This document shows, piece after piece, positions 3,954 to 9,330 of a stretch of DNA of 24,617 nucleotides. Origin of the DNA: Macrostomum lignano. Its lineage: Eukaryota. The stretch's first letter is position 1. Each line of letters opens with the position of its first letter. A program made the translations under genes and the position numbers. The stretch is taken from contig NIVC01001484.1 in the NCBI GenBank assembly GCA_002269645.1, forward strand, positions 179,346 to 203,962. The letters are read 5' to 3'. Under the pieces are notes generated by a model. The model did not search any database and was not told where the DNA came from. It worked only from the letters and a program-made list of their open reading frames with translations.

Positions 3954-6900
3954 CTAATAAGCAGCCCTTGACTGCATCCACAGCGGCCAACGCACAACCG
4001 CATGCTGCCACACGAACAGCGGCCTGACCTCATCCGCCTCGGCCGTCTCTGCAACCGCGGCAGCCGCAGCCGCAGCCGCGTCGGCCGCTGTCACGGCCAC
4101 CACACCAACAGGTGGCATCGTCGTTGCAGCCGCCACTCCGCCTGCTCTCATGAGCATCTCGCTCGGGCGGCCAACATCCACCCGACTGTTGGGCGGCTGA
4201 CGCGGCGACAGGGTCGTTGATCGCCGATTTGGCTGTTGCGGCTGCAACGTCAGCATTTGCTGGTTACCCTGCATCTGCGCCTCATCAACAGGTCGCTGCT
4301 CGGTGCTTCGAGTTTGCACTCGGACTCGAATTTCTGAACCAGCGTCGACGTAAACTTTTTGCGAAATTGGCGGCAAGTTCTCCTGACTGGTTGCAGCGGG
4401 CAACGGCTGGCTGGTGGCCTCCTGGCTGCTGCGAATGTAGGCCATGTAGCGACGAGTTGACGCTTGGGTCTTCTGCTTTTGCTGCTGCTGCTGCTGCTGC
4501 TGCTGCTGCCTCTGACTCGGCTCTTGCGGCCGTCCGTCAACACGCGACGAGCGCTGGCTTTGGCTGGCAGACCGAGCCCCGATGGGCGGCAACGGGTCGT
4601 TTGGATTGCGCAACGCCCGCATGGCAACAGTGGCGGCTGCAGCCGCTGTGGTGGAGGCTCCAGCTGACGATGACGCGACCGCCTGCTGCTTTGACGAAAG
4701 CGACGCTGGTGCCGGCGATCGCAGGCCGAGGCGTCGAGTTCTGAGCAGCTGGATGGTGCCGCGGTGAAACTCCTGCGGCTTGCCGTGCGACTGCGATCTG
4801 CTGTCAAAATGAAAACGAAAATAAAAGTTACAAAGAGTTCATCGTTTCATGTGCAGAATGCGGAATATACAATTTAATTATCAAGTTGGGTTTCTATCTT
4901 CAAAAACGCATTTCGCGTTAAAGGACGGAAGAAAATCGAGTGTTGGCTTCTTTATTTTTTTCCTTGAAACGTACCCAGGGGTGTTGATTCATTTCGTAAG
5001 CTTGTGCATCGCTACCAATAGGGATGTGAACTGAAGAGTCAAAATGGAGCCCGAAACATTCGGTCCCGGTTTCTCTAAGCCAATCCCTTCATTTCGAGCT
5101 TCAAATTCCTGAATGACGAGATGACCATGATAAACGCTCTCTTTATATGTTTGTTTATGAAGAATACGAGCGATAGTAATGTTATGTTATGCCCCTATTA
5201 TGTTTTCTCTTAATAATGTTTGTTATCCCCCACCCTAGCTCTCATTGTGTTTCGCCCTCGTCACAATTTCGTCACAATGTCGACGAAGTGGACGTTTACC
5301 CGACGCTTCGAGACGTTTCGAAAGGTTTTCGATCACATGAAATCCCCATTTATCCCATTTCTCCTCATAGAGATCCCCAAATGCGAAAGTGGTCGGTCTT
5401 AGGCATAACGGGAGCTATTTGGCTCCAAATGAAGGGATTGACATAGAGAAATCGGGACCGAATGTTTCGGGATCCATTTGATTTTTAAGTTCACATCCCA
5501 TTTCTGTTCTCACCTTGCTACCGTCTTCTGCTCTTTCTGAGACTCCGACTGCGGTTCCTCCGAATCAGCTGGCACAGCATCTTCGTCGTTGCCCTCGACG
5601 CCAGCGAGATCCTCCTGACTGTCCTCGGATGAGCCGGCCAGCTCCGGGAAGCCCCTGCCAGTGACGAGTCTCTGCCGCAGCAGCCAGTAGGCCGAGCACC
5701 AGCCGCTGAGGTCGTTGTCCACCGCGGCCGCCGCCAGCTCAGACACTGGAGCGCCGGTCGCTCTGCTCAGAAACCGAATGACGTCGCGGCTGATGGATGG
5801 CGTTGCCGACGATGGCGCCGCGTTGAGCTGCGCAGCGGCAGCCGCGGCCAGGGGGTCGCCACGGGTCAGGTAGGGATGCCGCAGACAGTCGATGGTGCTG
5901 ATCCGCGCAGTGGGATTCTGGTCGGTCATGCACTCCAGAAGGTCGGCCAGGTCTGCGTGACCGGATGATGGAGTCTGGGATAAGATATTCTTTCTAAGAA
6001 GTAGCTTAAATTTAAACCTTTATTAACTTTAATAACAAAATAATGAAGCACTAAATATTGAAGCACTAAGTATGGTACAGGAGGAGCGCTATCCTGAATA
6101 TTAGAGGTGCAAAGTAGGCTAGTGGAGCTCAACTAGAAGCCACAGTTGCCTAATAGCCTGATAGGGAGGCCTAGTGGAGTTAGAAATACCGTAGTTAATT
6201 ATACTCTTGGTATCTTCTGTATAGGAATGTAAACTATATCGTATATCATTATATCCTACATCCTATATCCTATATCCTATATCCTATATCCAATATCCTA
6301 TATCCTACATCCTATATCCTATATCCTATATCCTACATCCTATATCCTATATCCTATATCCTATATTCAATATCCTATATCCTACATCCTATATCCAATA
6401 TCCTATATCCTATATCCTATATCCTATATTCAATATCCTATATCCTACATCCTATATCCTACATCCTATATCCAATATCCTATATCCTATATCCTATATC
6501 CAATATCCAATATCCTATATCCTACATCCTATATCCTATATCCTATATCATATATCCTACATCCTATATCCTATATCATATATCCTATATCCTATATCCA
6601 ATATCCTATATCCTATATCCTATATCCAATATCCAATATCCAATATCCTACATCCTATATCCTATATCCTATATCCAATATCCAATATCCAATATCCTAC
6701 ATCCTATATCCAATATCCTATATCCAATATCCAATATCCTATATCCAATATCCTATATCCAATATCCTATATCCTATATCCTACATCCTATATCCAATAT
6801 CCTATATCCTATATCCTATATCCTATATCCAATATCCTATATCCAATATCCTATATCCTATATCATATTAAGCTCAGATTAATTGGCTTAAAAGCTTCAA

Positions 6901-9330
6901 ACTAACTAACCCCAGTCAACTCTGCTTAACTTTCGGATGCTAGAGAATAGAGCAAGCGATCGAAAAGGTGCCGTATTACTGGCGTAAATTCTGGAAATGC
7001 TAATTAGGATATGCGACATGCAACAAACAACAAGTTGAAGCTTCTTATTCGGTCTCGAATGCAATCCGTACCCAAGTTCATCGCGCGGACAGCGTGAGCC
7101 AGCGTTGCCTGTCCATCCGCTCCGTCGCCCGGGAACGACGGCAGAACCGCGCCGACGCTGTCCAGCTGGTGCGAAATCAGTCGGTAAATGAGAATGCCGC
7201 TGGAGTTCGCAGAGCAAAAGTTTCTTTTAGCGAAGATTGAGGACAGACAGACAGACAGACAGACAGACAGACAGACAGACAGACAGACAGACAGACAGAC
7301 AGACAGACAGACAGACAGACAGACAGACAGACAGACAGACAGACAGACAGACAGACAGACAGACAGACAGACAGACAGACAGACAGACAGACAGACAGAC
7401 AGACAGACAGACAGACAGACAGACAGACAGACAGACAGACAGACAGACAGACAGACAGACAGACAGACAGACAGACAGACAGACAGACAGACAGACAGAC
7501 AGACAGACAGACAGACAGACAGACAGACAGACAGACAGACAGACAGACAGACAGACAGACAGACAGACAGACAGACAGACAGACAGACAGACAGACAGAC
7601 AGACAGACAGACAGACAGACAGACAGACAGACAAACAGACAGACAGACAGACAGACAGACAGACAGACAGACGGACAGACAAACAGACAGACAGACAGAC
7701 AGACAGACAGACAGAAAGACAGACAGACAGACAGACAGACAGACAGACACTAAGACAGACACTAAGACAGACACTAAGACACACACTAAGACAAACAGAC
7801 GGACAGACTCACAGGCTCCAGATGTCAGTTGCTTTGGACAGAATTGCGTCGAGTTTCGACGGCTCGAGGCTGCTCTGCACAAACAGGTGGCAGCTCGCAG
7901 CATCTGAAGAGTTAAAGAATCACGTTTAGTTATTTGATACGCGCTGACACTGAGTAGTGAAATGTGTCTAAACAAACCTTTAAATTTCACTTTCTTCTGT
8001 CTGGTCAGAACAAATGAATCCGTGCTGAGTGTTCTGAAAAGAATTTTTGAAAAGTTTTCAACCTTTTATGAGAGCTTTTTAAAACAACTCTTTACTAAAT
8101 AGATAAATAGAACTCTTAGAGATAATCAGCCCCAATGTCTGTCTGTCTGTCTGTCTGTCTGTCTGTCTGTCTGTCTGTCTGTCTGTCTGTCTTTCTGTCT
8201 GTCTGTCTGTCTGTCTGTCTGTCTGTCTGTCTGTCTATCTGTCTGTCTGTCTGTCTGTCTGTCTGTCTGTCTGTCTGTCTGTCTGTCTGTCTGTCTGTCT
8301 CACCCGTGAAAGAAGCAGCGGCTGTGCAATCTGTGCACAGTTCGCAGCAAGCTTCTGACCAATCGACGAAATTCGGTACCGTTCACAGGGCTGCAAGGAG
8401 ATTTCGTGATTGAAATTTCATAGAAAAAATAAAAATTCTCTTCGTATTAAAATGTGAGTTTTTTCTCACCAGTTAACCGCATACTGCATCAGAGTCTGCG
8501 AGCTGTAGTGCTCGTAGACCAGCAGGATGGCGTCCTCCAGGTCCATTGCTTCCAGCAGTCGGAGGATTTTGCAATCAGCCAACTGAGTGAAGTGGCTCAT
8601 TTTGTGCACGATGGACTCAATGAGGGCCTTGTCGTCTCCGGTCTTGGCGTACACCTCCATTACTACCTAGATGGATAAAATAGATAACTGATAATAAATA
8701 GATTATATTATATTTTATTGGATAGAAAGATAGATAGATAGATAGATAGATAGATAGATAGATAGATAGATAGATAGATAGATAGATAGCTAGATAGATA
8801 GATAGATAGATAGATAGATAGATAGATAGATAGATAGATAGATAGATAGATAGATAGATAGATAGATAGATAGATAGATAGATAGATAGATAGATAGATA
8901 GATAGATAGATAGATAGATAGATAGATAGATAGATAGACAGATAGATAGATATATAGATAGATAGATAGATAGATAGATAGATAGATAGATAGATAGATA
9001 GATAGATAGATAGATAGATAGATAGATAGATAGATAGATAGATAGATAGATAGATAGATAGATAGATAGATAGATAGATAGATAGATAGATAGATAGATA
9101 GATAGATAGATAGATAGATAGATAGATACCTGGTAGATAGATAGATAGATAGATAGATAGATAGATAGACAGATAGATAGATAGATAGATAGATAGATAC
9201 ACAGATAGACAGATCTCACCTCCATCTCCGTAGGCCGGTGCAGTGCAGTCCAGACCTGGCAGTCGGCCAGGCGACTACGAACGCTCAGCAGCTGGTAGGA
9301 ACCGATGATGAGCGGATTGTCAGTCTCCAT
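3954..9330 (-). CDS. CAMK/AMPK-related (MARK-like) kinase-fold protein, probable pseudokinase, with a UBA-like segment and a Q/A/S-rich tail; about 651-671 aa
   Basis: Exons (minus): 9330-9220, 8666-8470, 8390-8304, 8033-7978, 7903-7813, 7199-7072, [6990-6931, uncertain], 5952-5514, 4800-3954. All introns are GT..AG and the phases are compatible. Spliced protein: IGSYQLL...[15 protein letters not shown]...[21 protein letters not shown]...[46 protein letters not shown]...[16 protein letters not shown]...[28 protein letters not shown], then UBA-like [11 protein letters not shown]...SAYWLLRQR. The 5952 acceptor and the 60-nt exon are the least certain parts. Confidence 0.85.
5041..5480. mobile_element. 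MITE-like element with 59-bp imperfect terminal inverted repeats, intronic
   Basis: 5041-5099 matches the reverse complement of 5422-5480 at 53/59 positions. The interior is non-coding. No clear TSD. Confidence 0.75.
6251..6866. repeat. Heptamer microsatellite (ATATCCT)n with ACATCCT/ATATCCA variants
   Basis: Direct reading; lies within a pseudokinase intron. Confidence 0.97.
7242..7808. repeat. (GACA)n microsatellite
   Basis: Direct reading; fills most of intron 7812-7200 and degenerates into cactaaga units near 7745-7790. Confidence 0.98.
8136..8300. repeat. (TGTC)n microsatellite, opposite orientation to 7242-7808
   Basis: Direct reading; abuts the donor at 8303. Confidence 0.98.
8721..9214. 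repeat. (GATA)n microsatellite
   Basis: Direct reading; fills most of intron 9219-8667. Confidence 0.98.

Follow-up and report, generated by a model that had tools for sequence, protein, structure and literature searches.

The 24,617-nucleotide stretch of the flatworm Macrostomum lignano genome analysed here (contig NIVC01001484.1, positions 179,346 to 203,962 of the forward strand, GenBank assembly GCA_002269645.1; hereafter the window) contains on its minus strand, at 9330..3954, a transcript-annotated, protein-coding gene. The encoded protein descends from an AMPK-related kinase and adds a new, very divergent member to the pseudokinases. The reading that we favour, and consider probable, is that this transcribed gene specifies a lineage-restricted AMPK-related pseudokinase that has kept the kinase fold and a UBA-like module and is most likely a non-catalytic binding module.

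The coding span was spliced by hand and with a script. It starts with an ATG at 9330, ends with a TAG stop at 3956-3954 and comprises eight exons, and every intron of the gene is of the GT...AG type. The spliced coding sequence of 1956 nt corresponds to 651 codons and a stop, with no internal stop codons. The two other frames of the spliced sequence have 17 and 14 stops, and none of its 2000 shuffles, with a mean of 19.8 stops, is stop-free. An in-frame TAA is located 15 nt upstream of the ATG. An earlier note, made from the letters of the window, had placed the gene at 3954-9330, which equals the deposited gene span of 5377 bp. Its claim of an intact frame holds as well, on the condition that the acceptor of exon 7 is the one at 5952 (cacgcag). 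A better-looking acceptor at 5974, 22 nt upstream, was rejected, as it shifts the frame and leads to a premature stop. The sequence RAMNLDLADLLE, resulting from the use of 5952, spans the junction of exons 6 and 7 in both public protein models. The acceptor of exon 8 is a tandem cagCAG (4798-4806), at which the public models differ (VASRSQSH vs. VARSRSH).

A word-index homology search with the product returned the protein itself and nothing else: with 100% identity across the 399 residues used as query, it corresponds to the 651-residue PAA67420.1, a "hypothetical protein BOX15_Mlig018525g1" of M. lignano from the same contig, labelled "Protein kinase domain-containing protein" in UniRef. The GenBank annotation of this assembly was derived solely from transcripts, using StringTie/TACO and a de novo transcriptome, a filter on reads per kilobase per million (RPKM), and open reading frames (ORFs) predicted by TransDecoder (PMC5730564). 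Thus the deposited model is indirect transcript support for the junctions described above. An older model of the same gene (P0002, UniRef A0A1I8I9B7, 1380 residues) agrees with the deposited one at every junction of the kinase part. This model takes the alternative CAG at the tandem exon 8 acceptor and has retrotransposon-derived sequence joined on upstream, a wrong fusion of pol peptides to the pseudokinase.

One possibility is that the gene model is partly wrong, so that the kinase-like part is real and the tail encoded by exon 8, the start, or the acceptor of exon 7 is foreign to the main mRNA. The fused model with its other exon 8 CAG, the lack of any domain in the tail, and the long ORFs in other frames of the GC-rich exon 8 would all be compatible with this. 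However, the two independent annotations place all junctions of the kinase-UBA part alike and read the tail in the same frame, the GenBank model is derived from transcripts, and the ATG is preceded by the in-frame stop. We consider an error of this kind quite unlikely.

The kinase domain is recognised by the Pfam profile PF00069 (Pkinase) with 51 bits against a cut-off of 31.7; the match covers residues 25-252 and profile positions 14-263 of 263. The motifs were compared in phmmer alignments to solved structures (SIK3 and MARK4) and in a MAFFT alignment with the 14 best relatives, and these two independent alignments agree on the changes. In exon 1 (9220..9330, minus strand as are all exons and introns of the gene; residues 1-37), encoding strands beta1-beta2, the Gly-rich loop is degenerate: both glycines of the family pattern IGKGNFAxV are replaced (by S19 and L21). 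Exon 2 (8470..8666, residues 38-103) starts with VVME in place of the VAIK of strand beta3 (Ala to Val39, Lys to Glu41) and continues with helix alphaC, where the family Glu is replaced by Lys59, and with the hinge VYEH, where Glu89 is kept. Exon 3 (8304..8390, residues 103-132) encodes helix alphaE and the start of the catalytic loop, LHSRCFFHG. Exon 4 (7978..8033, residues 132-151) provides the rest of this dead loop, GTLSTDS, and strands beta7-beta8. The family motif HRDLKAEN is thereby represented by HGTLSTDS, with His131 kept, Arg replaced by Gly, Asp by Thr133, Lys by Ser135, Glu by Asp137, and Asn by Ser138.

Exon 5 (7813..7903, residues 151-181) has DAA for the DFG of the Mg-binding loop, Asp151 being kept, followed by a shortened activation segment, EPS for APE, and the start of DIWSLG. 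The activation segment is approximately 12-15 residues shorter than in the family and has no T-loop Thr; in the alignments, the segment LxTxCGSPPYAAPE with the Thr phosphorylated by LKB1 is deleted or replaced. Exon 6 (7072..7199, residues 181-224) encodes helix alphaF and a poorly conserved, low-confidence loop (residues 194-212). Exon 7 (5514..5952, residues 224-370) completes the kinase fold (NPTARIS, RHPYL) and adds a linker, the UBA-like unit and an acidic stretch. Finally, exon 8 (3954..4800, residues 370-651) encodes a low-complexity tail rich in Ser, Gln and Ala, with a run of ten Gln.

The positions that maintain the fold have a different fate. DIWSLG (Asp177, Trp179, Ser180, Gly182), Arg240 of subdomain XI in NPTARIS, the hinge Glu89, His125, and the HRD His131 are all kept. 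Of the 73 columns in which at least 12 of the 14 mostly active relatives agree, the protein retains 32, the DFG Asp being the one catalytic position that survives. As judged from the alignments, the pattern is one of selective loss of the chemistry and retention of the fold. The changes listed in the earlier note (the Gly-rich loop, VVME, HGTLSTDS, DAA) are all present in both alignments, as are the scaffold motifs DIWSLG and NP..R....L.HP that it had described as retained. The APE motif that it had found missing is EPS, adjoining the gap that removes the T-loop.

One change goes beyond that list. In active kinases, the beta3 Lys and the alphaC Glu form a salt bridge that ties helix alphaC to the sheet of the N-lobe. 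Here both partners are exchanged reciprocally: the beta3 Lys has become Glu41 (codon 8655-8657, minus strand), and the alphaC Glu has become Lys59 (codon 8601-8603, minus strand). It may be that a Glu41-Lys59 salt bridge of reversed polarity persists. A limited literature search for precedents of a swapped beta3/alphaC pair returned nothing specific.

In sequence terms, a protein counts as a pseudokinase when one or more of three residues (the beta3 Lys, HRD Asp, and DFG Asp) are missing, and here the first two of these positions have Glu41 and Thr133. The losses extend to the Lys and Asn of the catalytic loop, the glycines of the Gly-rich loop, the Phe and Gly of DFG, the T-loop, and the Glu of APE, all of which are replaced or deleted. 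The assignment to pseudokinases made in the earlier note is therefore sound. Since the Gly-loop glycines are gone, the beta3 residue is acidic, Val occupies the place of the VAIK Ala, and the catalytic Asp, Lys and Asn are gone, phosphotransfer by this protein is very unlikely, and nucleotide binding seems doubtful.

Alternatively, the protein could be an atypical active enzyme, with catalytic residues relocated as in WNK, or with a different chemistry carried out on the kinase fold. In active kinases, the Ala of VAIK lines the adenine pocket; here it is replaced by the bulkier Val39. A compensating Lys in the strand of the Gly-rich loop is not evident. The DFG Asp151 is kept, Asp137 provides an acidic residue in the catalytic loop, and unusual ATP binding by pseudokinases has precedents, as reported in a preprint on ULK4 (bioRxiv 10.1101/2020.06.18.159293). 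However, an atypical enzyme would have to tolerate the simultaneous loss of both Gly-loop glycines, the beta3 Lys (with an acidic residue in its place), the HRD Asp, the Lys and Asn of the catalytic loop, and the Phe and Gly of DFG, on top of a truncated activation segment. This makes an active enzyme highly improbable.

The protein derives from an AMPK-related kinase, and its closest relatives are SIK and MARK. Among the 185 PDB sequences matched by phmmer, SIK3 is the best (E 1.3e-11), followed by MARK4, MARK2, MARK3, Snf1, and MARK1. The difference between SIK3 (47.7 bits) and MARK4 (42.6 bits) is small at such divergence, and the margins of AMPK-related kinases over other CAMKs are modest. 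Identity to the 14 aligned relatives is 19-24%. The best ten matches of an exhaustive protein scan, described below, include a SIK3-like protein of Artemia, a SIK1-like one from a tardigrade, and an unnamed protein of Timema with a SIK-like sequence; further matches read like MARK/Par-1 kinases. Many of these alignments reach residues around 316-324, beyond the kinase domain.

The predicted structure gives a similar picture. An AlphaFold2 model built on an alignment of 15 rows has a mean predicted local distance difference test score (pLDDT) of 81.8 and a predicted template modelling score of 0.79, with strands and helices in the order expected for a kinase and low pLDDT at residues 162-164. 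It consists of a bilobal kinase fold and a three-helix unit, and Foldseek assigns it to kinases with probability 1.00. All of the best 50 PDB matches are kinase-UBA or kinase-AID structures of AMPK-related kinases. SIK3 is the first (template modelling (TM) score 0.75), followed by MARK1-4, MELK, and AMPK, with approximately 330 aligned columns each. A MARK/AMPK-related layout had been proposed before. Both rankings bear out its AMPK-related part; they do not single out MARK, as SIK scores slightly higher. For this reason, "AMPK-related, subfamily unresolved" would be a more exact description than "MARK". As the catalytic motifs are lost, the protein is filed as a derivative of this family and not as a working member.

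As in SIK1-3, the kinase domain is followed by a short linker and then by what is predicted to be a three-helix UBA-like unit, whose last helix aligns with AxYxLL. The differences are considerable: identity is approximately 21-24%, the LKB1-phosphorylated T-loop is deleted, the catalytic residues are all gone except the DFG Asp, and the tail has no similarity to SIK tails. The MARK/Par-1 kinases, with the second-best matches, have the kinase-UBA layout named in the earlier note, and Tyr312 and Gly290 of the flatworm protein align with the MARK UBA. In contrast to them, the flatworm protein lacks KA1 in addition to the catalytic residues; neither KA1 nor any other Pfam domain was found in residues 331-651, even at E <= 10. 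It is not the canonical MARK or SIK of the species. The MARK homologues of another flatworm, Fasciola, are 78-84% identical to the human ones (PMC12837073), and the identity of this protein to MARK-like matches is approximately 22%, so it is not the MARK of M. lignano.

The three-helix unit (5663..5788, minus strand; residues 279-320) follows the kinase domain. Its helices at residues 279-289, 293-302, and 307-320 are predicted with pLDDT above 90, and helices at the three UBA positions recur in a model made from the single sequence. The unit retains the family residues Gly290, Tyr312, and Leu315, and its SAYWLL aligns with the AxYxLL of helix 3 in the UBA of SIK and MARK. Among human kinases, UBA is found in the AMPK-related family only; the UBAs of this family have low mutual similarity and no appreciable ubiquitin binding, and are packed on the N-lobe near alphaC (PMC3724675). 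The weak sequence signal of the flatworm unit, quantified below, fits this low mutual similarity. Thus the UBA-like "AYWLL" segment of the earlier note stands as regards the predicted helices and the alignment, and is weak as regards sequence scores. The Pfam profiles applied to the spliced protein likewise recover Pkinase and not UBA. On the model and the alignment taken together, the UBA unit is probably retained.

The tail of approximately 320 residues is acidic at first, then basic and Ser-rich, then Gln-rich and Ala-rich. It has no recognisable domain, and no Pfam domains were found in it or on the opposite strand. In the second M. lignano copy, represented by the older model P0002, residues 1-330 show no amino acid changes. 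All its differences, five substitutions and two indels, fall within residues 370-503 (Fisher p = 0.03), with all the substitutions and one of the indels in exon 8. The low-complexity tail is evidently under loose constraint.

The exhaustive phmmer scan covered 1.84 billion representatives of approximately 15 billion proteins, so that relatives more than 50% identical to the protein are folded into its own cluster and are invisible. Nothing above 28% identity was found outside this cluster, the next match having E 1.9e-12. Since the scan shows nothing closer, the gene is apparently lineage-restricted as far as sampled, in line with the lineage specificity that had been suggested for it. One of the top matches, a metagenomic protein of 360 residues from an environmental eukaryote (P0008), is itself a partly degenerate kinase resembling the AMPK-related ones, with HRNLSLDN and DLG, no Gly-rich loop, the beta3 Lys kept, and a clear UBA helix. 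Thus catalytic decay with retention of the UBA has happened elsewhere too.

Is the gene maintained, or is it a relic, still transcribed but without function, that arose by duplication of an AMPK-related kinase gene and is now drifting, with an open frame left over from earlier times? In favour of a relic, no catalytic motif survives, and the introns are swollen by microsatellites and a transposable element in repeat-rich surroundings. Further, the scan found no relatives that could show conservation, the gene identifier is not listed in the supplements of three M. lignano expression studies, and a frame-breaking acceptor lies 22 nt from the required one. However, identity to any relative is only 19-28%, and neutral drift so far would have wrecked the frame, yet there is no stop or frameshift in the 651 codons, the splice sites of the eight exons are canonical, and the stops are confined to the off-frames. 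The losses are selective, affecting catalytic positions and sparing those of the fold. The GC content of third codon positions is 0.71 (61.5% for the whole coding sequence, 26-49% for the introns) and has not fallen back to the level of the surroundings. Between the two copies, the kinase-UBA part does not differ, whereas the tail varies. We therefore regard a relic as rather unlikely. The evidence favours selective maintenance over decay, although indirectly: the open frame at extreme divergence, the transcript-based annotation, the codon composition, and the unchanged residues 1-330 in the second copy all agree with the maintained gene proposed in the earlier note.

A number of points weigh against the favoured reading of a maintained, non-catalytic pseudokinase with a UBA. 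The case for selection is an indirect one, drawn from the open frame, the composition and one near-identical copy. The transcript support comes through the annotation procedure and not from reads, and the gene identifier was not found in the supplements of three M. lignano expression studies; it is absent from the searchable full texts as well. The reading frame of the tail is poorly constrained, given the ORFs in other frames of exon 8. On the structural side, the 15 sequences of the model alignment are themselves SIK and MARK relatives, so that the resemblance is partly built in, and the single-sequence AlphaFold model is uninformative as a whole (pLDDT 40). Pfam UBA was not found in the protein even at E <= 10, and a profile of the UBA segments of relatives scores 3.5 bits, reached by 3 of 2000 shuffles, the match being essentially SAYWLLRQR. 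Finally, according to the preprint cited above, ULK4 binds ATP without the usual motifs; therefore, motif loss alone is no proof against nucleotide binding.

If the favoured reading is correct, the protein would combine a bilobal kinase fold with a three-helix UBA-like module packed behind it. It would have lost the parts that hold ATP-Mg and carry out the phosphate transfer, and also the T-loop by which LKB1 switches on such kinases. Having no T-loop, it would not be switched by LKB1 as its active relatives are. Given these losses, the role most likely is non-catalytic, by binding: the protein could be a scaffold, an allosteric partner, or a decoy that engages the partners or substrates of active kinases, and the long disordered tail could provide a second interaction surface.

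In active relatives, a basic residue of the substrate is read by the Glu of the catalytic loop and by the Glu of the SGGE motif after the hinge. The former is conservatively replaced by Asp137, and the latter aligns with the Thr of SSQT. With one of these residues lost and the other conservatively kept, substrate recognition, if any, has probably changed.

The best analogies for the mode of action appear to be Tribbles/STK40 and STRADalpha, although the protein is a member of neither group. Tribbles/STK40 are CAMK-group pseudokinases and function as scaffolds for protein binding (PMC7586955). Like the flatworm protein, they have a kinase fold of this group with a Gly-rich loop that does not work. 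In Tribbles, the beta3 Lys and the Asp of the catalytic loop are still present, SLE takes the place of DFG, and a C-tail binds COP1 and docks on the pseudokinase domain of the same protein. Membership in Tribbles/STK40 was rejected on account of Glu41, Thr133, and DAA; the UBA-like unit is a further difference. No Tribbles/STK40 proteins are among the 60 PDB matches listed, and no [DE]QxVP[DE] motif was seen on reading the sequence of the tail.

STRADalpha is a pseudokinase of the axis leading from LKB1 to AMPK-related kinases and activates LKB1 by allostery rather than catalysis. The analogy is functional only: STRADalpha is an ATP-binding member of the STE group without a UBA, and no sequence affinity between it and the flatworm protein was seen. 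PSKH2 is a parallel of another kind: it has an active paralogue in the CAMK group and turned into a pseudokinase within a limited lineage. However, PSKH2 is a few residues away from its active sister (Asn for the HRD Asp), whereas in the flatworm protein almost all catalytic motifs are lost, and the databases searched yielded no close active sister of it.

A bolder version of the favoured reading would assign the protein to an undescribed class of AMPK-related pseudokinases, in which a clamp between the UBA and the N-lobe, together with the swapped Glu41-Lys59 bridge, holds an active-like shape without nucleotide; the protein would regulate the LKB1-SIK/MARK axis in Macrostomum, for instance by sequestering substrates or partners. 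In this specific form the proposal is a speculative one, and we rate it as unlikely.

Several introns of the gene consist largely of simple repeats. Intron 1 (8667..9219, 553 nt) is 89% (GATA)n microsatellite (8721-9214), intron 3 (8034..8303, 270 nt) is 61% (TGTC)n (8136-8300), intron 5 (7200..7812, 613 nt) is 92% (GACA)n (7242-7808), and intron 6 (5953..7071, 1119 nt) is 57% a 7-bp repeat, (CTATATC)n (6234-6868). Intron 7 (4801..5513, 713 nt) contains an element resembling a miniature inverted-repeat transposable element (MITE) at 5021-5499, with terminal inverted repeats of approximately 80 nt (58 nt with 91% and 23 nt with 87% complementarity) around a core of approximately 320 nt. Simple and tandem repeats make up 15% of the M. 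lignano genome (PMC5730564), and the microsatellite-filled introns and the MITE fit such a genome.

The 3' end of the pseudokinase gene faces a convergent plus-strand gene at approximately 95-1995. The latter encodes a 177-residue protein, to which the precomputed Pfam list of the contig assigns EF-hand and dynein-light-chain domains, and an EF-hand exon is located in the ORF 770-1273. Upstream of the pseudokinase gene are minisatellites and a degraded pol of the Ty3/gypsy type (11289-13535, minus strand), whose fragments match the Pfam families RT_RNaseH_2 (4e-27) and rve integrase (1e-13). A minisatellite with a unit of 30-41 bp (TGGTTGTCTACCTGTCTTGAGGTATGTGG...) occurs in two arrays, 10920-11186 and 23184-23747, approximately 12.3 kb apart. 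The retrotransposon fragment and other repeat-rich DNA lie between these TGGTTGTCTACCTGTCTTGAGGTATGTGG arrays, which may mark where a larger element ends on either side. Two long overlapping ORFs at 17466-19429 on the minus strand (391 and 271 residues) are rich in Cys and His (..HGCSYCRAVG..) and have no Pfam match; the gene list of the contig has no gene there. They look transposon-related. On the plus strand, an Ala/Glu-rich repeat ORF, (AAAEAAAAE)n, is formed by a 15/30/45-bp tandem repeat at 20423-21217 and has no domain match. The same is true of the minisatellite arrays at 9784-10671, 15372-15984, and 24135-24617, with units of 24 bp and 16 bp. No Rfam RNA families were observed in the window.

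Pseudokinases are a recognised and widespread class, lineage-specific ones are common, and this find leaves the concepts unchanged. A description of the protein as a pseudokinase was not found in the searchable literature; it is already annotated as a hypothetical kinase-domain protein. The gene model obtained by splicing by eye is identical to the deposited, transcript-based one. A "hypothetical protein" of a flatworm that serves as a model of regeneration and stem cells thus becomes a defined AMPK-related pseudokinase with a likely retained UBA. The reciprocal exchange of Lys and Glu at the beta3-alphaC pair is a testable structural curiosity, and the gene as a whole is a natural experiment on the role that the kinase-UBA unit plays once catalysis and the control by LKB1 have been removed.

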